In this document: positions 33,067 to 63,084 of the stretch, piece by piece | How the letters are laid out: each line of letters starts with the position of its first letter | Position numbering within the stretch: position 1 is the first letter of the stretch | From: Syncephalis fuscata S228 | Taxonomy: Eukaryota > Fungi > Zoopagomycota | Reading direction: 5' to 3' | Assembly (NCBI GenBank): GCA_025786725.1 | Contig: JAHLTZ010000021.1 | Coordinates: 410,528-474,527 of the forward strand | DNA: 64,000 nt | Notes under the pieces: model-generated | The model's input: only the letters and a program-made list of their open reading frames with translations | What the model was told of the DNA's origin: nothing | Database searches by the model: none | Translations under genes and position numbers: made by a program

Positions 33067-33177
33067 CTTGATAAATTTAGCTATTGTAATAATGTTTATC
33101 TATTTTTGTCAATTGTTTGATTGTTATTGTAATTTAAAGCAGCAATAAAATAATATACTAGATAATATTTGTATTCA

Positions 33178-34736: not shown

Positions 34737-35548
34737 ACTAAATGACTAAATAGAACAAAAACAAACAGCAACAATGTGATCTATGCCGCGTATATATGGA
34801 TGCTGTCGTGTAACAACATGTGTGCTTATAACCAATTATATTGGTGATGTAAATATTAACAATATGTAGTTCAAAATAAATTGCAAGCATCAAATAGGTT
34901 TATTAAAGAATTGCTATATATAAAAACTGATATTATAATATCGAATATATAATAAAGACGAAAGTATTATGTTTTGACTAAATAATAATGCCTGTTAAAC
35001 TGTTATGTAAGTAATAGTATCAAACTTGGTATTTGCAATTATAAATTCAACACACTTATATTTAATAATATATTAAGTGCAGTCCTAATTTTTAGGAATA
35101 AAATTGTTATCATCATCATAGAAATTATATTAACACTATCGTTACTATTTATTAACCAAATAAATAAAATTTAAAATTGATTGCTGGTTGTTTTATTTTA
35201 AGAATAGTTTTATTATTGGCTAGCATCCCACATAATCATAGTAATTTAATAGCAATAACTATTTGAGCAATAGTATAGTTTACAGTGTATGTTTATTATG
35301 TAAATAAACCATTGTTAACTTTAGTTTACTCTGTCATTTCATTATTACAGATTCTAATGGAAAGTATCAAACATGTGTTTAACATATTTGCTATATTCAA
35401 ATACAATCTACAAGTGATTATTTATACTAGTTTCAATACAATGCTGAATATAATGTAGCAACACACGTTGTTACACGACAGCATCCATATATACGCGGCA
35501 TAGGTCACATTGATTGCTGTTTGTTTTTGTTCTATTTAGTCATTTAGT

Positions 35549-37116: not shown

Positions 37117-37680
37117 TGAATACAAATATTATTCAGTATATAAATATATCTGAAATGTTTTTACTGAACTTTACCATATGTTGGATTATAAATATTAGAT
37201 CACACAGTAAGAGTAATAAAAAATGATATATTTTATTGTTTGGTTACTTGATTTGCATTACGCTACCATCATTTATGTTGTTTATTTTATTAATTAAATA
37301 GCGATAGTTTTGTTTTTTTAAATATTAATATATTACAATTAGTTGCATTTAATACAACTACAGTTACATTAAACAGTTTAATAATAATATCAATGATTAG
37401 TTTACTATTTCATTTATATACTTTATTGTTATTCCACTAATACTAAACAATTTTTTAGGTTATTTAATAAGATTTGAAAGTCAAATGATTACATTTAATA
37501 TCATTTGTACAATTAAACTAAACGCTCTATCTATTGAACTAGAATTTGTTTTATTGAAAATACTCATCATTGTATATTCATTATACAAACTTACTTAAGA
37601 ACACTACATTAATTATTAGCATTTAATTAAATACATTGAACATAATTTATTATTTGGTTGGGTAATTAATATACATTAAT

Positions 37681-39173: not shown

Positions 39174-39400
39174 AAAGATAGCTGTAAACTTATAGAAAAG
39201 AACGAATAAATGAACAAAAAAGAATGTAGAGATGACACTAAGATAGAAAATAGGACACTGTGTAGTCTACTTCAACTCCTTTCTTTGTTGGTTCAAAATA
39301 CTTGCACTATTACGGCTAGGATTACTGTCACTGTTATTGTTATCACTATTGCTCCATTTTATTATAGTTGAACAGACATTCGAACATTGAGCTTACGATC

Positions 39401-40035
39401 ATGGCTTCGTCTTCTTCAGATGCCAATATAAATATGGATATTGATGCAGCGGCCACGGCTGATGCATCACTATCTCGACGTGAAGAAGAAATGCTTAGAC
39501 GTGATCGCACACTGGCCGAGACTTTACTACTTATGGACAACTGTCGGCCTATTGTAAGTAGCAATATAGACTGGCTACTGTTAAATGGCTATGCAATACA
39601 ATTGCTTATACTGTATACAAAATCGTTGATAGATTCCCGATGCTGTAACCGACTACTATTTATCGCGAGCTGGTCTCGATTGCCAGGATATACGCATGTA
39701 AGTAGAATATAATAAAGCGATCATATATATATATATAGAATAGAATAGAATAGAATATTAAACAACAGTATAGTAAACGCCTACTTGCACTAGCAGCTCA
39801 AAAATTCATATCGGATGTGGCCACTGATGCCTATCAATACTGTAAAATTCGTCAGCAAACTAACCGTGACAAGCGTAAAGCAAGTAGATTTAATTTTATT
39901 AATTTATCAACTAATAATAGCCAATTTATTTAAACTGTTAATTAGGATCGTCGAACGGTATTGACTATGGAAGACTTATCGTCGGCTCTTAACGAACATG
40001 GTATTAATGTACGCAAACCAGAATATTATATGTAA
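39401..40035 (+). CDS. TAF10: TFIID/SAGA subunit 10
   Basis: PIIPDAVTDYYL, KRLLALAAQKFISDVATDAYQYCKIR, TVLTMEDLSSAL.EHGINVRKPEYY. Confidence 0.95.
39880..39945 (+). other. GC-AG intron in TAF10
   Basis: AAA|GCAAGT...TTAG|GAT is the only nearby junction that restores the frame to DRRTVLTMEDL. Confidence 0.7.
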
Positions 40036-40129
40036 TTGCTTTATGTTTTTCTTTGTTTCTTGAAATAAAAAACATTGAGAAATATATTTATTCATTGTTG
40101 ACAAGAAGGAGGAGCATGTAGAAGGCAAT

Positions 40130-42068
<1,939 letters not shown>

Positions 42069-42824
42069 AGGTCAGTCTTAAAGACAGCAGCTACAATAAC
42101 CAAAACGTAAGAAAACGAGGAGAAGGACAGGAGAAGAAAAGAGTGGCGTGTCAGTATAAGGCGGCCTCTATATGGATTTCCAAATGATAAGACAGATAGG
42201 CCCTTAAAGACTGGTGTAACCCACTGTGGATGGTGTCGACGCAAATGTGTCTAGAACAGATCATTGAATGGACGAATAGATAGAAGGATAGATAGCTATT
42301 AGATAGTCCATACAATATAGATATTTATACTGCTGTTATCATCATTAATAAGATAAAGACAATGTCGTCATTGATTTATCTTGCTGTATAACGGAATAAC
42401 AAACTATAATTCATTGGATACATGATCTAAGGGGAGATGCTATATAGACTGGTCAATGCACGTTTTATCTAGTATGTTCTACTGGAACACGTGTTGGCAA
42501 GAATGGTTTCATTATACAGAAGAAAGAGATAGATAGATAGATAACTAGAGGATAGAGGCATAGTCACAATAAAATAACACTTATCAATCTACAACAAAGT
42601 AGAGACAAGATAGGCCATTTGTTCAAAAAATGAACGCCTTTTCTGTCAAATAAAAATATTGATTGTGTTGTTATTAAAGTGCTTTATATATATTTATTTT
42701 AACACTAGGATTTATATCGTCATTCAATTATTAAACAACTTGTAAACAAATACCACTTGACATTTGTTATTATTATTATTGCTCATTAGATTACGCGTTT
42801 GTCTATTCTTTGTTATAAGAAGCA

Positions 42825-43365
42825 ATGGTAACAACAAGAAAGCGACAGCGCGAATCTGTTTGTAAAGATGGTGACGGAGATGGCGACGACAGCCATACGG
42901 ATAAACGTTACATTTTAGACGAGGGTCCTTCGGTGCGTCCGCAGCATACTAATAATAGTACGGATATTATGGAGTCGGGGTTGGTGGAAAATCCAGCAGA
43001 ACAAAATGAAACGTCCGAGGCGACGACAGAAGATGTCATGGAAGATGTCTCAGATTTGTATTTGTCGGACGTTCATTTAGCACCAGAAAATGGATCAGTG
43101 GATGGAAAATGGCGTTGGTGGATCTTGACAACCAAAGAACTTAAGGATAGCAATAACAATGAAAATAAAAATGATAGTATGGACGGTAATGAAAACAATA
43201 CAATACAATGGACAGGTACAACACAATCAATTGCACCTTCAAAGCAAGATATTTCTGAACAAGAATCGATATCTGACGCTAATCGTCCAATAGTACTACG
43301 ATTTCGATTTGGAACAGATTTAGAAACGTTGGTAAGTAATGTATATGTTTGTAAATACACTATTC

Positions 43366-43398
<33 letters not shown>

Positions 43399-44364
43399 GG
43401 AGAACAAGTATGGGCAGGGGCATTGTTATTGGCCGATTATCTTGTAGAATATCATACGGCATTATTTACAAAAGAAAGTAAAGCTACCGTATTGGAACTG
43501 GGCGCAGGCACGGGATTGTGTAGCATTCTACTCCATCGATTAGGTGTTGATCGCGTATTTTGTACTGGTATGTTATTAGTGTAGTTTATTTACAAGAAAA
43601 GTGCTTAATTATAGCCATATAGATGCAAATCCTCAAGTATTGCGTAACTGTCAGTACAATATTGAATATAATTGTTCTACAAACGGTGATAGCAATGGTG
43701 TAGTTGTACGTAATTTGGATTGGCTACAAGCACCGGATTGGTTGACCAATAGTGAGACAAAGCCATTAAATGATCCAGGTAAAATGTTCACATTATAGTC
43801 AATGAACATTTATTAATATGTTATAACAGAAATGAGGGATTTTGAATGGACCGAACAAGATATTGCATGTGTGACTTCTGCAACTCAAGTGTTTGTAGCA
43901 GCTGATGGTTAGATAAATAGCATCGGTTTATTGATTAATTAACAAGTTAAATACTATATTTAGTTATTTACGACGATACAGCAACAGCTGCATTCTTGGA
44001 TATTGCATCTCAATTATTGCGACCATCATTGCTATTTAAATCCAGTGATCGTGTATTATACGTAGCTTCTGAGAAACGGTAAGTTAGATAATAATATTTA
44101 CACCAGAATTACTAAATACGTGTTAGTATTAATTTTTCATTGGATGAATTACGAGTTACGGCTGTTGCTCATGATCACTTTTTTCGTGAATTACGTAAAT
44201 ATCCTTGTTTGCAAGTGGACACCGACATAGATATTGAGGCTATTCCTCAGAGATTCTCATATACACGTAGTGATAATCTTGTAAGCAGTATTTTTATTTA
44301 ATTAACGCATTTACTGATTTTTTTAATTCAGGTATTATGGAAAATTACATGGAATGACAAATAG
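42825..44364 (+). CDS. Family-16 lysine methyltransferase, METTL22-like
   Basis: GEQVWAGALLLADYL, VLELGAGTGL, AADVIYDD, EKRINFSLDEL...AHDHF. Confidence 0.8.
43367..43398 (+). repeat. (AAT)n microsatellite in an intron
   Basis: About 10 AAT units directly before the acceptor AG. Confidence 0.9.
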
Positions 44365-46550
44365 TAAAGAAAAAATGTTGGTTGGCATTTACTTTGCACT
44401 CTCCTTCCCCCTACTCTAGTCCAATCAATGTTTTTACGCAATTAAGCATAATGATTTAAGTAATTGATTTGTGTTTAAATTATTATTCTCAATAAATATT
44501 AATGTAATATTATTACTTATTATCATTTCCATAAAATAGCATCAAATGTAATAGAAAATTGTATTAGTAATAATATTAAGCATTTCAATAAAGAGTGTAA
44601 CATACCATTTGATTTTATCAAAACATTTGAGACTGATCATTGTTGTTGTTGGTCATGTGTAGAAAGACTAATTGAACATTTATAGAAGCCATATGGTTAT
44701 GATCCCATGTCATTCTGCATTTGTTGTTATTGCATCTATGTACAGCATGGATTATTGCATCTGAATGGTCTGTTTCATTTTCTAATTTCTACTATTGCAT
44801 TATGGGCATATTTATGATGCAGGATTAATATTAATATAACTATTATAAATGTCGTTTATTAAACAGCCACTTTCCCTATAGCCAATCTGACTAAATAAAT
44901 GGCATTTGAGCAATTAATATCATAGTGACAATGTATATATTAAAATGATAATAATGATACCTAATTAAACAATTAGATTAATAAACCAATAAACAAACAA
45001 ACGATTAATTGACTACTTAAATAACTAAAAGTATGATTTAAAGGATTGAAATGGTGAAATGGTTAAAAGTAGGAACACAATATAAGATAGCTTGGGATAT
45101 ATAATCATACAGCATAGAATGAATAGACAAAAGGCAATAGATGAATAATAATAACAGCAAAGCTATAATATATGTGACTGAGTGAGAGCAATGAACTAAA
45201 TGAATTGAAATTCATAACAAATATAACTAGCAATAGACAGTTTTATTAGTAGTGTATGATGATCATATAATTCAGCATTAATTAGCAGTGCCATTTGAAG
45301 GAAAAGATCAATTATACTGAATGTCATTTGATCTTCGGAGCTACTCACTATTGTAGAACATGCTCAGCAATAAATAATGTATTATGAAAAATTAAAGCCA
45401 TTTAATATTAAATGTTATTATTATAGAGCAACTGCCAATAAAGTATGGAGTGTAATAGAAAAATACAATAAGTCTATTTTCTTAAGAACAAGTGTAGTTA
45501 TAAAAGGTGGCATTATTAAAATAATAAAGCATAATCATATTTTAAAAGATAGAGCAACAAGCCAGTAATTTAAATGAATGAATAAATAGTACGATGCTAA
45601 TGCCAGTAGAAACATGCACAGTGTATCCAGTACAATGGCCGGTGGTGAATCAAGGCTTTCTCATTTCTACCACCTATTACTACAAGAAATTAAATTGACG
45701 CTGTTGCATCAACATCATAATCAAACTATAGCATTTTATTGTAAGTAACCTAAAATACTATTTAGCATTGATTAACATCGAATATTAAAAAATAGTGCAG
45801 ACTGATTCATCTCCAATTAGTTCAATTAAAGTTGATGTGGCACTGCTTCAACAAATAACACTTTTCAGTATTAAAACTGATCGACGGTTACTATTCGAGC
45901 TATGAATCTTTTTGTCCTTCAGTTTGAGGCTAAGAGCCCAAAGTACAATATATTTTATATAGTAATACAAATCCTACATTTATATCAAGGCTGTTGATTT
46001 CATTTATATAATAACTATTTAGTAATTAAATAATTCCTTTATCGATTAAGTATATTTATTATGAACTAAACGAATCGCTTTAAATTTTAACACATTATAT
46101 GCCAAGACAATATTTATGATAATCATTTCATTCGATCACATATTTCGTCGCTAAACACATATAAATTCTTAAAATTAATTACTTATACCGTGCCTTTCTA
46201 CCAATCCAGTTCTTATCGTTATTAACTTGTATCTTCGGCATTACAGCATACTATTTATAGAAGAAAGTCATAGTCCCAAATAGTCCTTTATATATAAAAA
46301 ACCTGTAAAGATATCCACTTGTTTTATGAACGAATTCTGCGACAGTGTATCATTGTCAATATCCTGTTTGAATGCATAACTTTACATGAATGGAATAAGC
46401 TGGTGTAACTATACCTATCTAGAAAGAATTTCCACGATATCCGGTATTTAAATAGACTTCAGTTTTCGTCATCTTAGTGTGGTTGAAATCCCGCCTTTTT
46501 TCTACCTCAATAACCACTTTTCTATTGACCACTTTTTATCTATTGTTAAA

Positions 46551-47957
46551 ATGAGTCGAGAAACCAACCGACAAGCCACGCGTGTAGCGCGACTAGCGTC
46601 CATGTCACGCGGCCCAGACTCGCCTGGCTTTCTCGCTCTGCCGTCACCAAGCTTAATATTGGCAGACACTGATGACCAAAGCATGTTGGATCCATACTTC
46701 CATCCGACGCCTACACTAGCTTTTTCTTTCTACAATTTCTTCCTTGGCTCCTATGCTAATATACTACTTTTGGCGAGTCCTTTAGGGTTTATTGCATACT
46801 ATGCTGGTTGGAGCGGGACATGGATATTCACGCTGAATTTCCTAGCAATTATTCCGCTAGCTAGTATGTTAGGCTATGCCACGGAAGAAATTGCTTTGCG
46901 CTTTGGCGAAACCATTGGTGGATTGTTGAATGCAACATTCGGTAATGCTGTAGAATTGATCATTGCCATTGTTGCTGTCAAAGATGGTTTAATTCGTGTT
47001 GTGCAAGCATCGTTGCTTGGCTCAATTCTTTCAAATTTGTTATTGGTAAGAAGGATTGATATTATAGAAATGGATATGTAGCTAACAGCAATAATTGAAT
47101 AATTAGGTACTTGGCTTTTGCTTCTTGCTTGGCGGATGTAAATACTCTGAACAAACGTTCAGTTTAACTGCTGCTTCAAACTACGCTTCTTTATTGGCAT
47201 TGAGTTGTTTGTCGTTGCTCATTCCAGCTGCTTTCTGGATGACCTTGGCCGATCACGACAAAGCCAGTGAAGCCGTGCTTCAATTGTCGCACATTTCAGC
47301 CATCTTTTTGTTAATTATCTATTTGCTCTTCCTTTACTTCCAATTACACACGCATGCTCATCTTTATGAAACTGTTCAAGAAGAAGTAGTTGTAGACACC
47401 CGCCATCCATTGCACAACGATAACTTATCTGATGATGGCCAAAGCGCTCAACTTAAGGAACAAGATGAGGATGATGATAATGAGTATCCAACACTCACAT
47501 TGTCATTTGCTATGGCAGCACTTGTTGGCGTTACTATTCTTGTTTCCTTCCATGCTGACATGCTTGTAGCAGCTATCGAGTCCATCACTAAGGGCGGTGT
47601 ACTTACTGACACGTTTGTTGGTTTGATTCTACTTCCAATCGTCGGTAATGCCGCCGAACATATGACTGCCGTTACTACCGCCATGAAAAACAAGATGGAT
47701 TTAGCTATTGGTGTTGCACTTGGTTCTAGTATGCAGATTGCTTTGCTTGTCACTCCATTGCTGGTTATCATTGGCTGGATCATTGGCCAACCAATGACTT
47801 TGTTCTTCCATGGCTTTGAAACTGTTGTAATGTTGTTTCTGTGCTTATCACCAACTATCTTATTATGGATGGCAAGAGTAACTGGCTGGAAGGCGCTATG
47901 TTGTTGGGAACCTATGCAATTGTCGCTGTCGCTTTCTTCTACTACCCTGAGGCTTAA
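46551..47957 (+). CDS. VCX1: Vacuolar Ca2+/H+ exchanger (CAX/VCX1); one apparent 1-nt deletion near 47834
   Basis: [48 protein letters not shown] lies in the shifted frame. Intron 47046-47106. Confidence 0.9.
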
Positions 47958-47969
47958 TTACTGTTTTTA

Positions 47970-48135
47970 TGCAAATGTTTGTGTAAATTGCTATTAAATA
48001 CGCTATTAACTGCTACGGCATAAGAAAACATTTAAATTGTTATTATCAATAGACAAATATTTGTGTAAATTGCCATTAACTACATGATTAATTGTTATGG
48101 CATAAAATGCTTAGATTGTTATTATCAATATGCAA
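47970..48135 (+). repeat. Degenerate ~80-bp tandem duplication between the VCX1 and DCP2 3' ends
   Basis: caaatrtttgtgtaaattgc...ttgttattatcaata occurs twice. Confidence 0.6.
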
Positions 48136-48187
48136 AACGCGTACAATAAGAAACATAGTCACGTCAATAATGAGTATTAAATTTAAA

Positions 48188-50142
48188 CTATTTTGGCCGT
48201 AGAATGTCCAAAAGAGCCAACGCCGCCGATGATGAAGTGTTATTAATATCTACTGGTAATGCATCATGGTGTATACCATTACCAGCTGATGTTGAGACGC
48301 GAAATTCTGATAGCCATTTGCTAAAGGTCTTCTGCTGGCTTATAGACATGCGGATACTCTGCTGGTGATCCACCTGCCATAGAATAATCATATGTTGGCA
48401 TGCCATAAGTGGGACGGCCTGTATTGTTATTTACAAGCGGCTCATTTGAATTGGATAGCATATGCGATGTAATTCCTGGTGCTAGTGCTGGTGGCTGCTG
48501 TGCCTGCGGTAAAGGATAAGCTGGTAGTCCAGTTATCGGCTTACCTTGTAATGTAGCTAGTAATCGATCGCCAACATTCGTAGCATGCACATTAGAAGCA
48601 GGCTCATTTGTTGGCGCTGCCATTTGTGGCGGCCGTATCGTTCACCGCTGACCACTGGATGGGATTGGTTAGTATTTCTATTTAACATCGTTGTGCCATT
48701 ATCAGATGAAGACACTAGCTGTAACAATGCACTCATTGGATCGGTATTAGATCCAGAATTAGTCATACTATTTAAATACTCCAACAATGCTGCACTGCTA
48801 TCAACCGGATGCTGTGGGCGATGATCTGGCTGGACGGTATGCATTTGCTCACTTTGATATTTACTGCGAGTTCGACGGTGTTCCCTCTTTCCATGGCCAT
48901 TTTGACGGCCTTTAGCAGGCTGTGGCAGCTGGAGACGTTCACTTTCCGTGTCTTTGACCACATCAAGTTCCAAATGGCTGTGCGTATGCGATGTATTTGA
49001 CACTACCGTGCCAGCCAATGAACCACGTCTTGATGTTGGTGCGCTAGATCCGGCATCACCTTGACGGCGTCGTTCAATCCAACGACGTAAATCACTTTTA
49101 ATAAACATGATTATTAGATTGTTTAGCATATAGTTCTAGTAGATAAACACTTACTTTACAAAAGGAATCACCATATAGAATCGATTTCTGTTGTTGTTGT
49201 TGTTATTTGGACCATGCGATGGTGTCGCTGATCCTATTGCAACATGATGATTGCCTTCACGTTTAACACGATAGGTAGGCAAATCCAATAGTCGATACCA
49301 TGATATTTTCTATTCATCAATAAAATAAGCGACTATACACTGTTAAATAACGCCAAATACCTACACTAATCTCTTTGCGCGTCTGTGGATTAAACTGCGT
49401 CGATTCAGGAATACCTGGTATAATAAACAGTCGAATATGCTGTTCGCGAATAGTACGCTCCAGGTAGATATCTTCATCGACTAAAGGCGATAGATCAAAT
49501 CCTGTTTCTTCAAATACCTACGTGCCAATAGTGGCCATATACGATTAGAAGCCATAATGTAGCCACTTCTATAAGCATATATATATACCTCTCGTGCCGC
49601 ACAGCTCGCATACGATTCATCTTTGTTGATCTTGCCTCGTGGAAATCCCCAGCCGGCCTTAGAAGTCCAGCCTTTGACGAGAAGACATTTGTCAAGTGTT
49701 TCGTTAAGAATAATGGCCCCGCACACTGGTACGCGGAATTTATAGGTAAGAAAATCGCCATATGCCTTTTCATGCTCATCTGCCCAGTGTTGTAATAAAG
49801 GACAATGCCGAAAGAGTAGACTAGTCATGGTGTAGTTAATAGCTTATAACACCGTGTAGAACAATGATTACTGGCATTTAAAGGATATTTTTTGCAGAGA
49901 ATTGCTTTAGAGAAAAGCTTGGAAGGCTTGGATTTTGTTCGCGAATAAAATCTTCATAATACCAATGAGCCTGCTCTACTTGAAAGCATATTCGTTCCAC
50001 GGAGGCTAGCTCTTCTTCTGGTACATTAATGATAAAGCGGCTGGATTACTGTGTCAATCGCAGCACCAGCAGTTATTTTATATATTACTAACCTTGACAA
50101 ATCATCAAGTACTTCGGTAAATGTTGCCGTAGCAAACGCCAT
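48188..50142 (-). CDS. DCP2: mRNA decapping enzyme catalytic subunit
   Basis: [37 protein letters not shown], Nudix [27 protein letters not shown], Leu-rich HLM-like motifs in the C-terminus. Confidence 0.93.
49816..49888 (-). other. U12-type AT-AC intron in DCP2
   Basis: 5' ATATCCTTT, CCATGAC close to the terminal AC. Splicing gives FSAKIFRHCPLL. Confidence 0.9.
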
Positions 50143-51466
50143 TGTGCAATCCACGCCGGCCAAATAAGAAATAAACGAGACAAATAAAACAAATATTCAC
50201 AGGATGAGTTATGATGATAATAGTAGTAGTAGTAGTGGGAAGGCTTTTACGTATATCAAGTAAACAAGTACGCAATCACTCAGCAGTACAAGCTGCACGA
50301 AGCCAGTCCAAGCGCAGTCAGTTATTTATACGAAAAAGTATAGCCACAAAGCAGTACAGTAAGTAGTTTGTATTATCCTATGCTTGCATGTACAATATAA
50401 CAAAGCATCACAAAGATAGACGTAGTTAGATGACGAAAGAAGAATGTTTAAACGGTGAAGGTGCAAAATAGCTGAACAACTATGTAGTCGTATTTATTAA
50501 CCATTTACATATTATTTCTACACAATAGTGATGTGTAGCATTGGATCCACTATGTTTAAATATAATGTTGCATTTTACCAATTTATCCGTAGAATAAATA
50601 CGACATGTAACAATTAATGAAATGTATTAGTTTACATACTAGTTGTTTACTTTGATTTGATTTGATTTCTAACAGCAAGTATTTATAAAATTATCGACTT
50701 ACTGCTTACGAAATAATTACAGACTTATATGTAACTACTTACCTTGCATAATACATTATCTATAAAGTCATATTACTTTAATTTATTTTTATTTATTTAT
50801 TTCACTAAACAAGTACTAACCAAAACTATTGAATTTAAATTTAAAGAGATTATTTATTCGTGCAATTGATATATGTATTTTTTATTATTTATTGACACTA
50901 TCAAATTCGTCATTTCATACAGTCTGGTCCCTATAATTCGTAATGTCGTTAAATTCATATATTTAAGTACGATAGTGACCAAGATAATAAACTGTTTTGA
51001 AAGCAGGCTGATAATTAACAACTAGATGTGTAATAATCTTTATATGTTTAATTAGCATATTGGTTTATATAGCAATAGTTATTCCTTTAATTTAATAATA
51101 ATAATAACGCCAATATGTTAATAACGTTGACGATTACAGTTTATTTCGTCATTGTTCATATAAACAACTATATTATGAATAACTTATCACTACCAGTTAG
51201 TTGGGCAGAATCAACGTTAGTATACCACTATTACATAAAGTGGTATGTAGTATATACTAAATGTACATTGCCACATCTGCATCCATATATATATATATCT
51301 AACACATCTCATGTATTATTTACATAATAATGATGTACTGGCTATTACACTTCATTGCTGATTAAATGGGTGTAAAAGAATGCGCAAAATGTGTGCAATG
51401 TGATATTAGTGATGTGTACTAATTATTACATCATTATTGCGTAAAAAAGTACGTAAAAATATACAC

Positions 51467-52767
51467 TGTCGGACTTTGAATTTTTGCCTGACTAAATTAC
51501 ACACCACTCCACCCGGCACCAAATATTCACCATATGACTAGTCATATGAATTATCTATTCATATGATCAATCCGATGACTAGCCATATGAACTCACTCCT
51601 GACTAACCCATGATCTTATGACGATGATCGCCGACGTCATAGTATCATTATTACTATTATTATTACTATTACTATTATTATTACTATTATCACACGGCTA
51701 TACTAATTATTTTAGTATAAAAACCAACTCATTTTATTAACTAATAAACGATATCTTACATCCAATTGTTGAACTGTCTTATCTAACACACACATTCTAT
51801 TGATCAAGTCCTACGATAGTCAGAAAGTAGTGACTTTGACGACATTATTTGGCGAGCACCCGTTTACAAGACCAACTTTACATAGTTAAAGTCTCTTGTA
51901 AGGACCATGGATAAAAATCAGCAATTGCCGGAAAGTCGAGGCCAAGAGGCTACGTACGGACTTAAGGAGCAAGGGACCTCCAATCCGCTCGATTTGGTAC
52001 CGGAGCATGTAAGGTCGATACTGGAAGAACAAGCAAGGGCGTACCTGAATACGCAGAAATTACCAATAAATCAAGCAATTTATTCCCCGACATCATGGTC
52101 GGCCTGGCAAGCATATGAACCGAATTCAAGAAATCAAGATATGAAATTCGACAAATTTATTGAAACATTTACTGGCCGCGAAGACCCAGTAAACTGGCTA
52201 TTTGAACACTTTAACACTGCAGCGAGAAGGAACCGCTGGACCGATCAAGACTGCTTAGTAGCAGTAGAAACATATTTATCAGATGCCGCATTGGCATGGT
52301 GGACAGGTATTAGAACACGCATCTACCGATGGTGTTCAGGTGAAAAACACAGAGGATTTGAGCCTGGTTGTTTTGTACACGCGTTTGTGCAACGGTTTGT
52401 TACACCAGAAATGCGCGATTTGTGGAACAGACAATACAGTCAATGCCGATTACAAGGAAAAGAAGATGTGGCCAATTTTGCCGACCGTTTACGCGAATTG
52501 GTAAAAAGGATCAGCTTGTGCCGCCTGATTCAAGACGACGAGGTAAGTGAGAAATTTAAACAAGGTCTAACTACACCTTTAAAGGACGCAATAAGCGACT
52601 TTGAGGTAAACAAAGATATCGATTCTATGACATTTGAGGAACGTGTAGAAATTGCACTACGGTTTGAATACCATAGACGTCGTAATTTAGGTGATGATTA
52701 CAAGAAAAATTACTCAATGGAAACGCAGTCAACTGGACCAACGTACCGCACGCCGACAAGAACGCAG
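51467..52767 (+). mobile_element. Gypsy element A, 5' part: LTR 51467-51844, PBS-like TGGCGAGCACC, gag 51907-52767 cut by element B
   Basis: TG...CA 378-bp LTR identical to the reverse complement of 62383-62760. Retrotransposon gag (FTGREDPVNWL..YLSDAALAWW). Confidence 0.9.
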
Positions 52768-52939
52768 TGTAACGATATTATATTCGTTACGGGAAATAAT
52801 TGTATAATTTAAATATTATGCAATTATTTTCCCACAACACCTTAAATTAAGACTCCGCAAAGCTTATAAATAACACACATTTTCTGTTTAATAAAAGATA
52901 ATCTTTATTCCATTATATCCTATTTTACGGTTGTTACAT

Positions 52940-52957
52940 TGGTAGCAACGGGTAGTT
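52940..52957 (+). promoter_or_regulatory. Primer binding site of element B, initiator-tRNA-Met type
   Basis: TGGTAGCAACGGGTAGTT is complementary to ...AACUACC-CGUUGCU-ACCA (A1-U72 pair and A-rich T-loop end typical of tRNAiMet). Confidence 0.7.
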
Positions 52958-52965
52958 ACTAGTAT

Positions 52966-53302
52966 TTGCGTTTGTCGCACCGTTTATTTTGCGTTTGTCG
53001 CACCGTTTATTTTTGCGTTTGTCGCACCGTTTATTTTGCGTTTGTCGCACCGTTTATTTTTGCGTTTGTCGCACCGTTTATTTTGCGTTTGTCGCACCGT
53101 TATTTTTGCGTTTGTCGCACCGTTATTTTTGCGTTTGTCGCACCGTTTATTTTTGCGTTTGTCGCACCGTTTATTTTGCGTTTGTCGCACCGTTATTTTT
53201 GCGTTTGTCGCACCGTTATTTTTGCGTTTGTCGCACCGTTATTTTTGCGTTTGTCGCACCGTTATTTTGCGTTTGTCGCACCGTATATCGCGTTTGTCGC
53301 AT
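52966..53302 (+). repeat. 15-copy 22-24 nt tandem array (TTTTGCGTTTGTCGCACCGTT(T)A) in the leader of element B
   Basis: Counted directly. Invariant core GCGTTTGTCGCA with variable T runs. Confidence 0.95.
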
Positions 53303-53417
53303 TGTCCTCTTTTCAATTTTATTTTATTTTTGCTTATCAGTGTTTGAAAATAAGCACCGCTGTTTTAAAATTACGATTCAGTATATAGTACACGTTGAGA
53401 CTGATTTTATTCTCACC

Positions 53418-54275
53418 ATGAATTCCCGCTCACCACTCACACACACCGAAAAGTTCACCGGTGATTCCAGTTTGCCTGTGGAACATTGGTGTAACATGGT
53501 AGAAGACGCATGGGAATTGGGTACATTTACAGACGAACAAAAACGTATAATGGCGTCCCAACAACTATCGGGACCAGCGGCAGTTTGGTATCAATCGATA
53601 CGCGGCGGTAATACGCCATATAGCACGTGGGAACAACTGAGGGACGGAATTTTAGAACGTTTTGGTGGCAATCGATCAGCGGACATCGCGCGTTTGGAAC
53701 TCACACGATTGCGCTGGACAGAAGATAAAGACATTGAAGAACATATTACAAATTTCACAGCACTGCGTAGCCGAATTCCAGATGCCGCTGACATGGAATT
53801 GGTTACGGCATTTCGACTTACGTTGCCGCCGGAATACTTAACCGATTCGATACATAATAAACCCACCAATATCAACGAAGCTTATGCTTCCACACGTGCT
53901 TTCTATTACTCAAGGAAACATGGATTACAACACTTAATACCACCACCAACTAAATCTAATAACGGCCCAACACCAATGGATTTAGATACTATAGTCCAAG
54001 CTTTAAATAGTTTAGGTTTTATTAATAATCGTAGCAGCAATAATAGCAACAGCAGTAATTACAATAACCGTAACAATTACAATAACGGGCCTAAATGTTA
54101 CACATGTAACAAACGTGGTCATCTAGCCAGAAATTGTAATCGCAATAACAACCGTAATTACAATAACCGCGATAACAACAATCAACAACAATCTAACAGC
54201 TTAGATTTACAATCAACAAATGTCGACGTCCAAGCAAACAACAACGTAATTCAGGGAAACGACAACCGTCAGTAA
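53418..54275 (+). CDS. gag: Gag of element B with CCHC zinc knuckle
   Basis: ATG 53418, [21 protein letters not shown]. Confidence 0.9.
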
Positions 54276-57200
54276 TTAAGTGCGGCACACTTACTGACGG
54301 CCAGGTTGCCGCTAATACTCCGATACCACCCGGATTTGAGCAGTCTACACTCATTCAAGGTCGCGCTAGCTCCGGTTTAATTACAGTAGCACCCACAATC
54401 AATGGTGTTCCAGCCCATGTATTAATCGATTCTGGTGCATCCACCAACTTTATGGATATTGAATTTGCCAAGAGGGCTCAAGTACATGTTACGAAACAAG
54501 CAAATTCAACCAATGTAAAGTTGGGAAATGGTATGGAGTGCGGTGTATCTGGTACTGCTAATAAAGTGCCTATTATTTTCAATTATCTGAAAGAACAAAT
54601 TGATTTTACTATTATGAAATTGGGCAACTATAATGCAGTGCTAGGTATGCCATGGTTAAGAAAACATGAAGCGCAAGTAGATTGGAAGACCGGTGTTATT
54701 AATTCTAATTGTAATTCAGCACCCAAAAGTACATTAGAAATTATCGACAAAATTCAGCCTTCATTCATGTCAATAGAAGAAGTCGAGCAAACAGAAGCCA
54801 ATGATATGATTTTATTAGCGATGATAAAAGAAAACAAAGAAAAAAATGATACATCGTTAAATGGCCGTTACGCGCGATTGTTGGGTGAATTTGCCGATGT
54901 TGGACCAGAAGAATTACCACCTGGTTTACCACCAAAAAGAGACATTGATATATGTATCAATTTGGTGCCACATCAGCAGTCACCATTTCGGCCTACATAC
55001 CATCTGGCAAAGAAAGAGTTAGACGAGTTGAAGAAACAGATCGATGATTTGTTAGAAAAAGGCTTTATTAGGCCTAGTACATCACCATTTGGTGCACCTG
55101 TACTATTTGTGCGGAAGAAAGGAGGTGATTTACGTATGTGTGTGGATTACAGAATGTTAAACGCACAAACAATTCGTGATCGTTATGCGTTGCCACTGAT
55201 CGATGAATTATTCGATCAGTTACATGGGGCGAAAGTATTCTCAAAAATAGATTTGAGAAGTGGATATCATCAAATAAGAGTAAATGAAGATGATATTCAC
55301 AAAACAGCGTTTAGAACGCGCTATGGGCATTATGAGTGGACGGTGATGGGATTTGGATTGACTAATGCACCGTCAGTATTTATGCGATTAATGCATAATG
55401 TATTTCATAAATTACTAGACAAGTGTGTAGTGGTATTTTTGGATGATATTTTAATATTTAGTAAAAATCATACCGAACATGAGTGGCACTTACGGCAAGT
55501 GCTACAATTACTAAGAGAAAACAAATTATATGCCAAATTAAGCAAATGTGAATTTGGTAAAGATGAGGTGGAATTTTTGGGACATATTGTTAGTGGCGAT
55601 GGTATAAGACCACTACACGATAAAGTAATGGCTATTGCAAATTGGCCTATACCAAACAATCTGAAAGAACTGCGCTCTTTCCTCGGACTAACTGGCTATT
55701 ATAGACGGTTTATTCGTGGATATGCTGATACTGCACGGCATTTAAGTCAATTGACTAAGAATGATGAGCCATTCACATGGGGAGATAATCAAAATACAGC
55801 ATTTGACACACTACGTAATGCGATAGTTACAGCACCGGTATTGGCTATACCAAATGTTAATGCGCCATTTATCGTTACTACGGATGCATCGGATTATGCA
55901 ATTGGTGCAGTATTATCACAAATAACTGATAATAATGAACATCCTGTTGCATTTATGTCACGTATATTACAGGCAGCCGAAAAGAATTATGCTACATACG
56001 ATAAAGAAATGTTAGCTATTCTAGAAGCTACTAAGTTATGGCGCCCATATCTTAGTTATGGCCATTTCGTAATATATACTGATCATGCACCGCTTACGCG
56101 CCTGTTTAAGCAAAAGGAAATGTCATCACGCCAAACGCGTTGGATTGAGCAGTTGCATCAATATGATTTTGATATCATATATAAGCCAGGCTGTGCTAAT
56201 GTTGTAGCCGATGCATTATCACGACGTACATCGCCTAGTTATAACGCTATAAATGCTACAAACCTCTCTTTATTCCAACAGCGTGTTTTAGCTGGTTACG
56301 ATCATGATGAACACTTTACAGGTGTAAAGAATGTTCTTATGGGAGGAAGGGCTGCAGGCAATGCTGCGGCAGTTAAAATTTCGCGACATTTTCGGCTTGA
56401 TGATCATGGATTAATGTACGAGTTAAAAGACATTGAACCACGATTATGCATACCAAATTACGATAATCTATATTTGGATATACTTAATGATCATCACGAT
56501 GCAGCTGCTCACTTCGGCGAAGAAAAGACTATTGCAGCAATTAAGCGTAAATATTATTGGCCTGGATTGTCCAACATGACAAAGCGTTATATTAGGTCAT
56601 GTGAAGTGTGCCAACGCACTAAACACTCCCAGCAGTTACCTGGTGGACTATTGCAACCACTTCAAATTCCGGAAGGACGTTGGCGCGATATTGCAATGGA
56701 TTTTATAGTGCAATTGCCACGTACTAGTAGTGGTTATGATGCTATTTTTGTTGTAGTCGACCGCTTTACTAAGCGCGCTCACTTCGTACCGATGAAGACG
56801 ACAGCTACGGCTGTTGATGTTGCACAATTGTTCATGCAGAACATTGTACGTCTTCATGGCATGCCCCGCTCTATTGTATGCGACCGTGACGCCAAGTTTA
56901 CCAGTAAATTTTGGCAAGAACTACATAAAATACTTAACGTACGTATATTTATGTCAACAGCATTTCATCCCGAAACAGATGGCCAAACAGAACGCATAAA
57001 CCGCACGCTAGAACAATTATTACGTACATGCGTTAACTATCAGCAAAATGACTGGGATCAACATTTAGCATTAGTTGAATTTGCGTACAATAATGCTAAG
57101 CAATCATCAACTGGTAAATCGCCATTCTATACTGATTTGGGTAGCCACCCCTACATGCCAGACGATTTAGTACGACAACACAACTTCGGCAACAAAACTA

Positions 57201-57775
57201 ACGTGCAAAGTACTGCTGCATTCCTGCAAAAGATGAATGACATTTATTTAGAAACACGCGAAGCGTTAAAGAAAGCACAAGAACGACAAAAACAATATGC
57301 AGATCAGAAACGAAGAGAAGTAGAATTTAAAGTTGACGATATGGTGCTGTTATCAACAAAGAATTTGACACCAGAAGCGGAACGTGAACGACCAAAACGT
57401 AAATTGGCTCATCAATTTACGGGACCATTTAAGGTCATTCAACGGGTATCGACTGTAGCGTACAAACTACAATTAGCACCTAACATGAAAATACACAATG
57501 TGTTCCATGTTAGTCTGCTAAAGAAGTACGAAGAAAACCCGCCAGAGTTTGTAGATCGTTACCCGCCACCGCCACCACCGGAAATAATAGATGGCAACGA
57601 AGAATACGAAGTAGAAAGCATATTAGCTAAACGTGTCAAACGCAACAAAATAGAATATCTCGTTAAATGGAAAGGCTATGCGGAACATGATGCAACCTGG
57701 CAATCGTTACGTGACTTAGACAACGCATCAATACTAGTACAAGAGTATGAAAAGCAACACCAGAGTCGGCGTTAA
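54254..57775 (+). CDS. pol: Pol of element B (PR-RT-RNaseH-IN-chromodomain), reached by -1 frameshift
   Basis: VLIDSGAS upstream of the annotated ATG and in frame, [16 protein letters not shown], integrase core, C-terminal [16 protein letters not shown] chromodomain. Confidence 0.95.
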
Positions 57776-57960
57776 TCCAAGGGGGATGATGTAACGATAT
57801 TATATTCGTTACGGGAAATAATTGTATAATTTAAATATTATGCAATTATTTTCCCACAACACCTTAAATTAAGACTCCGCAAAGCTTATAAATAACACAC
57901 ATTTTCTGTTTAATAAAAGATAATCTTTATTCCATTATATCCTATTTTACGGTTGTTACA

Positions 57961-59131
57961 GCAACATTGATGCTGTGTAGCACCACTGTCTACAATCCAC
58001 TTATCACTAAGTGAGTTGTTTGCGGTATCGTTGACGGAGAATAGATAGGTATTCTGAGTATCAGATTTATTTGCACGTGGTTTTGAATCGTTGTTGTTGT
58101 TATTGTTCTTTCGCTTGAAACAATCGGCGATAAGGTGACCTGGCTTATGGCAGTAATTACACTTCTTGGAGGTTTTTCGCTTGTATTGTTTGTTTGGTGA
58201 CGAATATAAAGCTATTTCGTTTGATTGGGATGATTCGTTGCGTCGATTTTCTTCGGTCAGAATGCGATTAGTGACATGAGCAACGTCCAATTCTTCAAGA
58301 TGTCCTTCAATAGAAACAACAAAGTGTTCATAGTCTTTGGGAAGACTGTAAAGAATAACAGTTACGGTATCAAGTTCTGATACACCGATTCTTAGTTCAT
58401 CAAGTTGTTCAGCCATGGCAATGATATTGCCGATATGATCTTTCATAGAAGTAGAAGGATCCTTTTGGTATGTGAAGAACTTGCGTCGTAAGAATACAGC
58501 AGCAGATACACTTTTTGCTTGAAATAAATTATTGATGGCCATTAAGGTAGCTTTGGTTGTCTTGTGTGATTTTAATTGTCGTACATATTTTGCTGTCATA
58601 GCGAGGGTGATTATGGCGCGTGCACGTTTGTCGATGGCGATCCAGTCGTCATATGTGTCTTTATCATCCTTGGTAGGTGGATCTTGGTCCATGGTACTAT
58701 CAATGTCCTTTTCAATGAGCAGAGCGTGTATTTGCTCTCTCCATGATTGGTAATTATCATCGGATAATCTTTCGATAGTTGATGGTCCAAACGACATTAT
58801 GTAGAGTAACGAGGTGACGGCTTAGAAGTAAAGTTTTGGATAATGAATGTATGTACTAGAGAGAATGTGAGACTCTTAATCTGTTAGAATGAAAAGGGAC
58901 AATAGAATGGATTGAATTGAATAAAATGGATTGTTAATTATTTATTAAAATGTGTTACCGATTTTGGTTATTATATAGTTAGTGGATTCAATTTAGTCAC
59001 GCGTTATGATGAAGTGTGATTGTTAGTCATGTGTTTGCATTTAAGCATGATTAACCAAATATGGTAATTAATGTCAGGCAAATACCTGACGGTCAGGGCC
59101 TTGGACATATCGAATGAATGCGGTGTAAACA
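57961..59131 (-). mobile_element. Ty1/Copia element, 5' part: LTR about 58882-59131 (outer end uncertain), gag-protease 57961-58797 cut by element B
   Basis: IERLSDDNYQSW, ILYSLPKDYEHFV, CNYCHKPGHLIADC, WIVDSGATQH. Confidence 0.9.
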
Positions 59132-59149
59132 CACGCATTATTTCAATAG

Positions 59150-59307
59150 TTGTAATGTTCGTTTCTGTGCTTATCACCAACTATCTTATTATGGATGGCA
59201 AGAGTAACTGGCTAGAAGGTATTATGTTGCTGGGAACCTATGCAATTGTCGCTGTTGCATTCTTCTACTACCCTGATGAGGAAACCTCTAACAGTACGGG
59301 GCACTAG
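59150..59307 (+). pseudogene. Orphaned 3' segment of a second VCX1 paralog
   Basis: [42 protein letters not shown], highly similar to 47825-47950, preceded by Copia sequence. Confidence 0.85.
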
Positions 59308-60164
59308 TCATTAAAACTCAGTTGCATTTTTGAAATAGCGCAATTTACAATAACTGAAAATCAAACCAACTTTGACCGACATTTGCCATTGTCGGCTTGC
59401 TCTCCTTCATTAATTGGTTGATTTTCAAGCGTTTCTCTTTCTAGCTACCTAGATTGCTGAGATTTAATAAAGTAACAAACCATACTTTTATATCCACTCT
59501 AATTAACGCTATACATCAATACTATGTGCAGTATGCTAAACTACTCAATCCTATATCATCAAAAACATAGACTACATTAAATATATATATATGAGTGTAG
59601 TATGTTTTCTATGACTCCATAATAATTATAACTTATTACATTCAATTTTTCGGTTAAAGTAGATCCGATAAATGTTCAAATCTAATGACGCCATACAATA
59701 TGGCAATCCGAAAAAATAAACTTGTACATAACAGTCATGCGGGGCCGTGATAGTTCTTATTATAATAATAATGTACACTAATTTGATTGGAAATATAAAA
59801 CACCGAATGTTTAGTGGATGTTTATGGTATACGCAGTGTGCATCTTATACATCAATTTTTTTCGGCGTTTTAAGTAGAGCTTTTTGTTATTTATATTTAG
59901 ACACTTTCCATTGCCTAGTAAAGTAAAATAACTATGCGGTTTTAGCATAATGTTTTTATCCGTAATCTATTCGATCAAACTGAGTATCAAATCTTTTTAC
60001 TGGATAGAACATGTCATTGCCACATGTCGTGATTTTCTATTATAAATACTCGTTCTTTTGATTAGCTGTTTCTTTATTCTTTACTTCCTATCCGCCTTCC
60101 ACGACTACGACTTGAATCCAAATTACTTTCTTTTTGCATTTTGGAAAATATATTACGATAAATT

Positions 60165-61260
60165 ATGGTTGACTTCAAACTTTCTGCTATTTCTGCCGTG
60201 ATTGCTGTGGTATTACTGTCAAACGTACAGAATGCTGTTGCGCGGCCAGGCCTTTTTGATATTTTCAATAAAGGTACGCTTGACATGTTTTTTATATTAT
60301 ACTAACTTTAAATAATAGATGTGCCATTTTTGGGCTATTCAAAAAATAAGGACAGTCCATTTGCTATGCGTGGTCTTGACATTTATAAGACACACCCTTC
60401 AGACCAGCCAATTCAATTTGCAAGTGCAACAATTGGTTCAAGCCCTAAAAAAGAAGTTACAATTGCATGCTCAAGCAAGGCTTTATATAAAAGTAATCGT
60501 TTAGGCGCGGCATTTGATGTAATAATTATACAATATTAATCATACAACAACTAACAAGTTTTGCAAACAATAGCACCTTATAGCAAATTCCTATTCCGCT
60601 AATAATCCAACTAAACCAGGAGAACAGTATATTAATGGCCCAATAGGTAGACTTGATGTAAATGCGCCAGAATGTCGTCATACTTCGGAATGCTCCCCTG
60701 AGAAAAGCTATGTCTGTCACTATTTCTCGGCAGCCTGTGAAGCGCCGCTACCCGAATATCTCAAGCTTATTGATACTAATCCCAAGTTGGTTAGTGGAGA
60801 CGCTACTAATGCAGCAAAAGGAGTAATAAAACAAATTATAGAAGGTAAGCATATCCAATACTGCATTTATACCTTACTTATCATATACTAGGTTTACAGT
60901 ATATGAGAAACATTGGAGTCATATATAACATGAACCATCCATGTAAGTTACCAAAAAACTAAATAGCAAATTAATAATGCTGTGTTAGACATCTGTGTAA
61001 ACATGCCCGGCAAGGTTTCGTTCTTTTTTAGAGAAACTATATCATTTAAGGGAGCATCTTTTTGGAACGATTTTATAAGAGAAAATTCAGTTAAAACGTT
61101 AAACGATGGTTTGAAAAAAGCACTCACTCAGTACTACCAATCTGCATACCCACCCAGATTAATTACCTCTGATATAGAACCAAGAGTTACTAGTGCTACT
61201 AACGGCCTTTTATTAAATAATGACTGGTCATTCCAGCCATATCGACAAAGCTCGCAATAG
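60165..61260 (+). CDS. Secreted kinase-fold-like (pseudokinase) protein, about 5 exons
   Basis: Signal peptide MVDFKLSAISAVIAVVLLSNVQNAVA. Spliced KQIIEGLQYMRNIGVIYN resembles kinase helix E, without HRD or DFG. Confidence 0.6.
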
Positions 61261-62195
61261 TTTAAATTGCTATATTTAACTTTCTAATAATCAATAGAAA
61301 TCAGTCACTTATGGCTTTTATTTGAATTAATTTACTGATGAACATACTTGGCAATAGAAATAAATAGCGAATTAACCATAAATTAATTATATTATGCGCT
61401 AAGGATATCATGCACGTCTATCCACTATGCTTTACTATCATTTTAGCATAGTAATTTGTTGTTTGATATTAAGAATGCCAATTATTTTCATTCATCCAGT
61501 GTTGCTATTGTGTAATGGCTCAGTTTATTTAATACACAACCTTTCAATTAATTAGATTTAAATATAGTTTATTTAGGACAGAATGATATGTTTATTATTA
61601 CAAGTTGATCAGATATGTACAATAAATAAATTTAATTAGAATATAGTTAATTAGCTAGTAATATTACTTACAACCAGTTTTTATCAATTTTTAAATACAC
61701 ATAATATATAACATATAAAAGAGTATACTTAATTACTATACAGTACTGTTTACCAACTATAGGTATTAGTGTGTTTATACAATACATAATTAACGATAAA
61801 CTATTATATTCGATTGCTGATGTCACTTGAGTGGACGTAAATTAACACAAATCAGCTACATAAATTAGTTATAGAATGTTATTTAATTTACGTTGACATT
61901 AAAAAACAACTATACAATTATAAACAAAACAGCTGGCATTAAATGTACGGTATAGATTAACAAAAATAACAAACTATATGTGATCAAATTATTAATTAAT
62001 TTGATACTGTGTTGGTGTATTGTTACTTAAGTTTTGAAATAAACCAGTATTAATTTTTTACAAAGAATACACCAAGTTATTCTAAAAGTGCCTATAAGTA
62101 TAACAAATATTCTTTTTAATAAAGCTATGCGTTTTATAATTTTTTGCTTTTTTATTTTTGGAACAAATAATATTTTCTGCTATAAAATTTTGTGA

Positions 62196-62277
62196 GTCAG
62201 TGTGTCCGAGTGGTTAAGGAGTGTGACTAGAAATCACATGGGCTCTGCCCGCACAGGTTCAAATCCTGTCGCTGACG
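62196..62277 (+). tRNA. tRNA-Ser(AGA)
   Basis: Acceptor GTCAGTG/CGCTGAC, anticodon arm TGTGA-CTAGAAA-TCACA, variable arm GGGC-TCT-GCCC, GGTTCAAATCC, TTTT terminator at 62282. Confidence 0.97.
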
Positions 62278-62382
62278 ATCCTTTTGCTACGCAACAGAAT
62301 GTAGTTTTCTTGCATTATTTTTTGTAAAAATTTCAAGTTTAACATGTAGAAAAACCCGTAAGGCTGCTGTCACGATTGTGTA

Positions 62383-63084
62383 TGTCGTCAAAGTCACTAC
62401 TTTCTGACTATCGTAGGACTTGATCAATAGAATGTGTGTGTTAGATAAGACAGTTCAACAATTGGATGTAAGATATCGTTTATTAGTTAATAAAATGAGT
62501 TGGTTTTTATACTAAAATAATTAGTATAGCCGTGTGATAATAGTAATAATAATAGTAATAGTAATAATAATAGTAATAATGATACTATGACGTCGGCGAT
62601 CATCGTCATAAGATCATGGGTTAGTCAGGAGTGAGTTCATATGGCTAGTCATCGGATTGATCATATGAATAGATAATTCATATGACTAGTCATATGGTGA
62701 ATATTTGGTGCCGGGTGGAGTGGTGTGTAATTTAGTCAGGCAAAAATTCAAAGTCCGACATTACCCTTCCGTTAGATTAGCGTCCGTCCTCGGTCGCCGT
62801 AATCGACTATCTTCAGTATACCATCGTCGTAGTCGGTCTCGATGTATAACTCGATACTTCTCTTTATGTGGTTCTTTCAACTTATACGAACCATTATTCA
62901 AATCATCGTAAACAATCCAAGGTTGTTCTTCCCATTTTGGTTCAAGTTTACGTGATGTTGGTCGTAATATAGTTACCAAATGTCCAATACTAAACTCATA
63001 ATCATTATTAGATGCATGTCGTTTGCTATTAAATACATTGGCATGCGATTGTTGTGTTTGTATGATGCGTTGTCGAACAGTAGG
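62383..63084 (-). mobile_element. Gypsy element A, 3' part: integrase C-terminus 62761-63084, PPT, 3' LTR 62383-62760
   Basis: KLEPKWEEQPW..NNGSYKL..IHRDRLR. The stop codon abuts an LTR identical to 51467-51844. Confidence 0.9.

Follow-up and report, generated by a model that had tools for sequence, protein, structure and literature searches.

Nested elements at the end of the contig

The window, a stretch of 64,000 nucleotides from Syncephalis fuscata S228, reaches the end of its contig (C124) at window base 64000. Its last part carries a single-copy block with two genes, the tail of the exchanger gene VCX1b and all or part of four LTR retrotransposons: A, B, C and a Copia element (Table 1). 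Elements A, B and C belong to Ty3/Gypsy, as judged from LTRs of the form TG..CA, a 5-bp target site duplication (TSD), gag and the domain order PR-RT-RNase H-INT. Pfam domains of A are gag and a pol in that order with an additional dUTPase, those of B are gag with RT, RNase H, integrase and a chromodomain, and that of VCX1 is the Na/Ca exchanger domain.

Table 1. Features of the right-hand part of the window (window coordinates)
Feature	Position	Strand	Remarks
TACAC, left TSD of A	51462-51466	+	Sequence reading
A 5' LTR	51467-51844	+	378 bp, TG..CA
A gag, first part	51907-52767	+	Retrotrans_gag; interrupted by B at 52767/52768
Element B, full-length chromovirus	52768-57960	+	LTRs, gag, pol, unmatched flanks
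B LTRs	52768-52938 and 57790-57960	+	171 bp, 100% identical
B 23/24-bp tandem array	52965-53300
B pol	54452-57775	+
Copia element, 5' part	57961-59148	-	Reference positions 1001-2188 (copy in L016)
Copia gag	58797 down to 57961	-	Pfam: Copia-type gag
Copia 5' LTR	58882-59148	-
VCX1b tail	59149-59307	+	Starts with GTTGT (59149-59153), one copy of the Copia TSD
Single-copy block	59308-62377	+	Gene and tRNA-Ser(AGA)
Intron-containing gene	about 60166-61260		In single-copy block
tRNA-Ser(AGA)	62196-62277		In single-copy block
GTGTA, second copy of A's TSD	62378-62382	-	TACAC on the minus strand
A 3' LTR	62383-62760	-	378/378 identity with 5' LTR
A interior, final 324 bp	62761-63084	-	End of integrase region; 100% identical to two full A copies
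Element C (chromovirus), nested in A	63085-64000	-	Contig terminates within C
C 3' LTR	63085-63422	-	Followed by polypurine tract and integrase C-terminus with chromodomain

Two split elements and the ancestral order

The first-pass annotation described A as one Gypsy element split into opposed halves with a common TSD, and this description stands. The two LTRs, 378 bp each by direct reading (TGTCGG...GACGACA), are 100% identical; 51467-51845 and 62382-62760 form an inverted repeat of 100% complementarity, and TACAC flanks both halves on their outer side. Two separate A insertions, opposed by chance, might be envisaged, since the family is very young and its copies hardly differ inside (99.9-100% identity). 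However, the TSDs at other A-family insertions (GCCTA, TATCA, ACGAG and GTAGT) are all unlike TACAC; five other A sites show no target preference, and a shared outer 5-mer would arise by chance in only about 1 of 1024 cases. In addition, the two LTRs have a microsatellite length common to them only, the remaining A LTRs differing by an indel of 6-35 bases or a substitution, and one half consists of the 5' part only and the other of the 3' part only. The split of Copia and VCX1b independently yields the same ancestral order. Chance juxtaposition is therefore vanishingly improbable and already effectively refuted, and a single insertion as the origin of both halves is confirmed by TSD, LTRs and content alike.

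The Copia element is the second split element. Its 3' half and the 5' part of VCX1b lie inside contig C35, where the second copy of the GTTGT TSD is found (C35:196597-196601). The LTRs of the two halves are identical, and VCX1b is continuous across the site, as is VCX1a. Two other copies match the Copia gag at 99.7-100% identity. Copia pol and the 5' part of VCX1b had been predicted to lie beyond the window, and both were located on C35 with the matching TSD and identical LTRs, but the Copia half there stops at position 2247 instead of 2189 and adjoins an element D. D, at C35:199,976-205,229, is a second full-length element with unlike flanks. Measured along the Copia element, it sits only 59 bp from the site of B, and its LTR has no twin elsewhere in the assembly. 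A genome-wide search for Copia positions 2189-2246 (58 bp) returned nothing.

The TSD pairs of A and Copia together fix the ancestral order, which on these markers is proven to be C35 (up to 196601), Copia (minus), window 59149..62382, A (minus) and the reverse of window 1..51466. The right end of C124 and the interior of C35 were, by the same markers, formerly contiguous. Relative to this order, the last 12.5 kb of C124 departs in its arrangement by an inversion, with the breakpoint hidden inside B. The reversal is marked independently by the A TSD (TACAC) and by the Copia TSD with VCX1b (GTTGT), and the flipped segment comprises the Copia 5' part, the VCX1b tail, the gene, tRNA-Ser and the A 3' part, including a gene block of ~3 kb. 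The 98% match over 1.5 kb between 44477-45976 and C35:190160-191657 reflects a repeat family of high copy number and gives no ground for a duplication tied to the inversion.

Assembly path or chromosomal inversion

Element B was singled out in the first-pass annotation for identical LTRs and mismatched flanks, and both features are present. Its left flank, CGCAG (52763-52767), closes the first part of A gag, and its right flank, GCAAC (57961-57965), belongs to the Copia gag on the minus strand; B is thus a repeat copy with flanks from two separate insertion sites, as at a breakpoint. An ordinary B copy used for comparison has AACAG on both sides, and ten other elements or solo LTRs each have a perfect 5-bp TSD, so that unlike flanks are rare and clustered at one nest. 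Over 4000 bases, B and the copy on C168 differ at a single position. The SNP pattern along B, compared without its putative partner copy, gives no crossover signal, and an exact-protein look-up of the chimeric Copia-gag/B-LTR open reading frame found nothing on record.

The counterpart of this junction is missing from the assembly. There is no further B on C124 or C35, and neither predicted reciprocal junction string (B followed by CGCAG and the second part of A gag, gag2; GCAAC followed by B) occurs in the whole 29.4-Mb assembly. Genome-wide searches recovered neither the remainder of the split A copy (gag2-pol) nor the junction of C with A pol; a lone string match to C followed by GTAGG, on C191, is a coincidence, C being nested there in a B variant. 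The reciprocal B copy with swapped TSDs was the annotation's own touchstone for a real inversion, and by it the proposal fails for this assembly. Nevertheless, little weight attaches to this absence, as the lacking sequence would fall within a repeat nest that was not assembled. Four public runs were found, one from an unrelated organism and three consisting of tiny sets of very short, mainly repeat contigs; none of these contigs bridges B or any junction, and loose ends matching 62382, 59148 and 63085 are other copies of the same elements.

We lean towards an origin in assembly, by cross-threading through two near-identical B copies, as the probable cause, rather than an event in the cell. 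The two B copies would lie in opposite orientation, one in A gag (TSD CGCAG) and the other about 12-17 kb away in Copia gag (TSD GCAAC), both surrounded by repeats 99.9-100% identical to copies elsewhere. An overlap assembler may have merged them, entering from A gag and leaving into Copia gag; the path would then return across the single-copy block, reach the 3' end of A and halt in element C. A and Copia would both be intact and simply nested, and no chromosome rearrangement would be required.

The position of the join suits such a path. It lies inside a long near-identical repeat amid other repeats, and the contig, 6-11 kb further on, breaks off within a nested repeat. As B, the A interior and the Copia gag are all nearly identical to copies elsewhere, a unique anchor on both sides needs reads spanning ~7.7 kb. 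The alternative-path sequences (A gag2-pol, B joined to CGCAG-gag2, GCAAC joined to B, Copia 2189-2246 and the junction of C with A pol) are all absent, which is the product expected when identical repeats collapse. D, with its unlike flanks, adjoins the partner Copia half on C35; two 5-kb repeats ~66 bp apart make a 10.5-kb stretch in which no anchor is possible. The rarity of unlike flanks elsewhere points the same way.

Contig C323, from the same repeat network, may hold a similar switch. Its element E is flanked by AGTGG and ATGAC, and the first 1.5 kb is a diverged variant, E_X, with 14 mismatches. From about D's insertion site on, it agrees without a mismatch with the E copy at C124:382563 for 4.45 kb, of which 452 bp are flank of the C124 copy, and C323 then ends. 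The genuine 3' portion of E_X, flanked by AGTGG, is on C35 behind D. This contig end appears to pass from one E copy to another at D's insertion site, but the assembly has three occurrences of the 452-bp flank, and the tail could be a real duplication. C171 and C285, which start inside E, were rejected as partners of the E fragment on C35, as they carry the flank GGTAC or duplicate the C279 locus, where AGTGG is required.

Several points weigh against an assembly origin. The source runs appear to be noisy long reads. Other elements of 5-6.6 kb were assembled with their matching flanks, so that B may well have been spanned. At least two wrong joins would be needed, one on C124 at B and another on C35 at D. 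Furthermore, two perfect 5.2-kb inverted repeats lying 12-17 kb apart would undergo appreciable recombination in vivo, as established from yeast, which gives a real flip no small prior probability.

A real inversion by homologous recombination between inverted B copies in A gag and Copia gag, with the reciprocal B beyond the contig end, is a serious possibility, although we incline against it. It was the interpretation put forward in the first-pass annotation, of which the breakpoint at B, the geometry and the single A insertion are retained, whereas the reciprocal B and its junction are missing from the assembly. The swapped flanks of B are exactly those expected from a crossover between two insertions, and the A and Copia TSDs prove that the orientation of the block changed relative to the left flank. 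One all-repeat gap of ~21 kb, holding the rest of C, A pol-gag2, B, 66 bp of Copia, D and the 5' part of E, could house every missing junction together. Other elements in the assembly are correctly threaded, and repeat-mediated inversions are well documented in fungi (PMC3102749, PMC6591007). On the other hand, a second B copy, a reciprocal junction and a spanning read were all sought and missing in the assembly and the short public contigs, and a further event or misjoin is required at D on C35. The same network of transposable elements includes a contig end that appears to switch between element copies, and all events must be later than insertions whose LTRs remain identical.

Explanations outside these two are, taken together, unlikely. 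One dispenses with a twin of B: the Copia element would have broken between 2188 and 2247 and been repaired by connection to other sites, themselves broken or invaded, with full-length B and D captured at the joins or bridging them and with loss of the 58 bp between. B and D, both with unlike flanks, do lie on either side of a single 58-bp gap in one Copia copy; the assembly has neither the 58-bp piece nor the two reciprocal junctions, and D's LTR is without a twin. However, the LTRs of B and D are complete with precise ends, D's flank in E_X and B's flank in A resemble ordinary integration sites, and three simultaneous breaks would be needed. The incompleteness of the assembly makes absence weak evidence here also. 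Moreover, cDNA captured at breaks usually consists of truncated copies. We regard this repair as very improbable.

A variant of the real-inversion reading is flip-flop of the block (VCX1b tail, a secreted-protein gene and tRNA-Ser) with the inner A and Copia halves between two perfect inverted 5.2-kb chromoviruses, both orientations being present among coenocytic nuclei. This is speculative, as is a B-D break mended on either side through ectopic homology of retrotransposons; we give such schemes little credence. The only recombinase-like genes are retrotransposon integrases, and the candidate inverted repeats, should there be two, would be entire 5.2-kb elements and not short sites, which does not match a programmed invertible segment.

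Relation to known rearrangements

The kind of event is already known under either reading, whether flip or assembly mix-up. In Ty1/Ty rearrangements of Saccharomyces cerevisiae (PMC3102749, PMC9879454), dispersed full-length LTR retrotransposons of ~5-6 kb likewise provide ectopic homology, and recombinant copies likewise have flanks from two insertion sites. Experiments in yeast show both junctions, whereas here a single junction is assembled and may be a computational join; unlike yeast, the present case concerns the draft genome of a mycoparasite that cannot be cultivated alone. The long-inverted-repeat inversions of Candida albicans (PMC6591007) share a flipped segment with breakpoints hidden in repeats, and inversions bounded by transposable elements in other taxa (PMC12368964) share the flipping of a segment between inverted repeat copies. 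In these cases both repeats and population or read support are available, whereas here the second copy is only postulated. Closest to an assembly origin is the ambiguity of plastid inverted repeats, in which a unique segment between inverted identical repeats gives two equally valid graph paths, all four repeat/flank junctions fit either orientation, and only reads exceeding the repeat decide. Both plastid isomers truly coexist, whereas the present block is read in one orientation from one assembly.

For scaffolding and synteny, order and orientation across these nests are untrustworthy without long-read checks; the suspect joins also include C35 at D and roughly the last 4.5 kb of C323. If real, the inversion would be another driven by retrotransposons, in a little-studied zoopagomycete. 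The inversion itself would disrupt no gene, VCX1b having previously been broken by Copia.

Element A and the element at its breakpoint

A repeat search of the window returned an inverted pair with 100% complementarity (51467-51845 and 62382-62760), which corresponds to two LTRs of the retrotransposon A on opposite strands. TACAC (51462-51466) directly precedes the plus-strand LTR, and GTGTA (62378-62382), which is TACAC read on the element's own strand, follows the minus-strand LTR. The plus-strand LTR is followed by a stretch resembling a primer-binding site and, from 51907, by a gag ORF (Pfam Retrotrans_gag); the minus-strand LTR adjoins the final 324 bases of the A interior (62761-63084). 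The halves are complementary in content, one having 5' parts only and the other 3' parts only. LTRs of different A copies vary chiefly by an internal microsatellite of variable length, which is the same only in the two window LTRs. The common flank, microsatellite identity and complementary content establish that the halves are one insertion, as the first-pass annotation had claimed.

A full copy of A elsewhere encodes gag-PR-RT-RNase H-dUTPase and integrase and therefore belongs to Ty3/Gypsy. In the full copy on contig C339 (L002:2798-7258, minus strand), the dUTPase domain follows RNase H (Pfam E = 7e-41) and the integrase is a separate downstream ORF. Two full copies (TSDs GCCTA and TATCA) and two solo LTRs (ACGAG and GTAGT) have perfect 5-bp TSDs, and these four other insertions show that the family generates 5-bp TSDs without site preference. 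The gag2-pol portion of the window copy, beyond the B insertion in gag, is absent; the assembly has A gag2-pol in three other copies only, two complete and one partial.

Features of the split elements and their neighbors (C35 is another contig of the assembly; other positions are those of the window)
Feature	Location	Strand	Details
A LTR	51467-51844	+	378 bp; sequence read directly
A LTR	62383-62760	-	378 bp; sequence read directly
B	52768-57960		Complete chromovirus
Tandem array in B	52965-53300		14-15 units of 23/24 bp, between primer-binding site and gag
Copia fragment	57961-59148		Positions 1001-2188 of full copy (in L016, stretch holding reference copy)
VCX1b 5' part	C35:195823-196605	+	Inside contig; search with VCX1a protein
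D	C35:199976-205229		Full-length Gypsy; LTRs 265 bp, 99.2% identical

Element B is bounded by a direct pair of 171 nt (52768-52938 and 57790-57960; 100% identical in the repeat search of the window). Its left flank, CGCAG, is formed by the final bases of A gag, and its right flank, GCAAC, lies within a minus-strand Copia-type gag. Variant copies of B elsewhere differ in the region of the tandem array (first 375 bases, 96% identical).

The split Copia and the ancestral order

The Copia fragment adjoins the tail of VCX1b, a second VCX1 copy broken by Copia, which starts GTTGT (59149-59153). The missing 5' part of VCX1b on C35 is directly followed by a minus-strand Copia LTR identical to the window Copia LTR (267/267). 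The C35 flank before Copia also ends GTTGT and the intact paralogue in the window, VCX1a, is continuous across the corresponding point, indicating one Copia insertion (TSD GTTGT) with its halves on two contigs. The C35 half extends back as far as reference position 2247, and the stretch of this copy between the two halves (2189-2246) is missing from the assembly.

Combined, these two insertions define the ancestral order: C35 (through base 196601), Copia (-), window 59149-62382, A (-) and the reverse complement of window 1-51466. In the contig holding the window (C124), the segment Copia 5'/block/A 3' is inverted relative to this order, and B occupies the exact junction; the block is a single-copy segment with an intron-containing gene and tRNA-Ser(AGA). 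The inversion geometry proposed in the first-pass annotation, with B at the junction, matches this order, which also provides an ancestral link between the end of C124 and the interior of C35.

The 222 bp of VCX1b that immediately precede Copia (C35:196380-196601) are 100% identical to VCX1a (window 47607-47828), the preceding stretch and upstream exons ~70-89% and the tail after Copia 94%, with a 1-base insertion. The 222-bp identity may represent a gene-conversion tract between once-convergent paralogues. Window 44300-46200 contains two ~550-bp arms of a very-high-copy repeat family (706 first-look candidates genome-wide, ~80% identity), of which one copy, at C35:190160-191657, is 98% identical to the window copy over its whole 1.5 kb.

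Assembly artefact versus inversion

Under both main readings, A and Copia would each carry a B copy, the two being near-identical and inverted relative to each other, and the sole difference is whether the exchange between them was a cellular event or arose in the overlap graph. Both are of a known kind: retrotransposon-mediated inversion or assembler inverted-repeat path ambiguity. Nothing suggests a dedicated inversion system, and there are no recombinases apart from the integrases that the elements themselves encode.

A reciprocal B (GCAAC...CGCAG), predicted beside the A gag remainder and Copia pol, was not found. The window is C124:410528-474527; C124 is 474,527 bases long and ends at window base 64000, leaving no sequence to the right. 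Neither C124 nor C35 has a second B, and exact-match searches of the 29.4-Mb assembly returned neither "B 3' end + CGCAG" nor "GCAAC + B 5' end". The C35 Copia half adjoins D, not B.

On balance, an assembly artefact is somewhat favored. The anomaly is located where a contig ends among nested repeats that are 99.9-100% identical, no sequence belonging to the alternative path is present, and another contig has a second cross-flanked element at a distance of 59 bp, as would be natural if a B-66 bp-D composite could not be anchored; a copy switch on contig C323, described below, points the same way. That a B x B inversion really took place, with a mixed population included, is a credible but less probable reading. 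In its favor, other 5-6.6-kb elements are correctly threaded, one 21-kb all-repeat gap would conceal all missing junctions, and long perfect inverted repeats are known to recombine readily, as in the Ty1 and Candida long-repeat work (PMC3102749, PMC6591007). Break-repair or capture involving a single B is very improbable, and the small remaining probability belongs to none of these readings.

Because the inverted and uninverted arrangements share all four B junctions, they can be told apart only by molecules that exceed B in length. The only runs with the block were three tiny collections of very short contigs (mean, <50 bases), mostly covering repeats, which we infer to derive from noisy long reads; none contained a junction-bridging record. 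A fourth run is from another organism, and the loose ends reported are flanks of other element copies.

Elements D and E and other suspect joins

D has unlike flanks: GTTGT in the Copia 3' half on the left and AAATC inside an old copy of E on the right. Its LTR has no other occurrence in the assembly, and D marks another suspect join, or a recombination, within the 669-kb contig C35. Of E, C35 has only the 3'-most 4.07 kb, from a slightly diverged copy (E_X) whose right flank is AGTGG. The matching left flank (AGTGG plus E start) occurs once, at C323:94083, where E (94088-100039) is uninterrupted and flanked by AGTGG and ATGAC, the latter being the flank of the E insertion at C124:382563. In a windowed comparison, the first 1.5 kb of the C323 E has 14 mismatches to young E copies, and from ~1430-1500 it matches the C124:382563 E without a mismatch for 4.45 kb, including 452 bp of flank, after which the contig ends. 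The switch point coincides with the D insertion site in E_X. On the simplest reading of these sequences, the C323 end is probably chimeric, extended by reads of another E copy. The tail could instead be a real duplication, as the 452-bp flank is present three times in the assembly, once as an "empty site" copy on C39. On this 23.6-kb contig, 5951-10443 is 99.5-99.6% identical to the C124:382563 E flanks (within C124:379993-389992) without E, and is either a haplotig, which would point to heterozygosity or a mixture of nuclei, or the product of a recent segmental duplication.

Perfect 5-bp TSDs were present in the ten other elements and solo LTRs checked (A, two; A solo, two; B; C, two; E, two), and unlike flanks are therefore rare. 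The three cases (B, D and the C323 E), all in one connected nest, are flagged as suspect joins.

Element C, which has many copies (99.9-100% identical), behaves as a terminator of contigs: C124, C168 and C50 each stop 480-915 bases inside a copy. Many short contigs have a nest of C in a B variant at nearly the same offset, ~4.7 kb from the contig start (C188, C189, C191, C192, C331 and C98), and C101, C13 and C10 have it near their ends; the pattern is either a repeated chromosome-end/array structure or redundant contigs.
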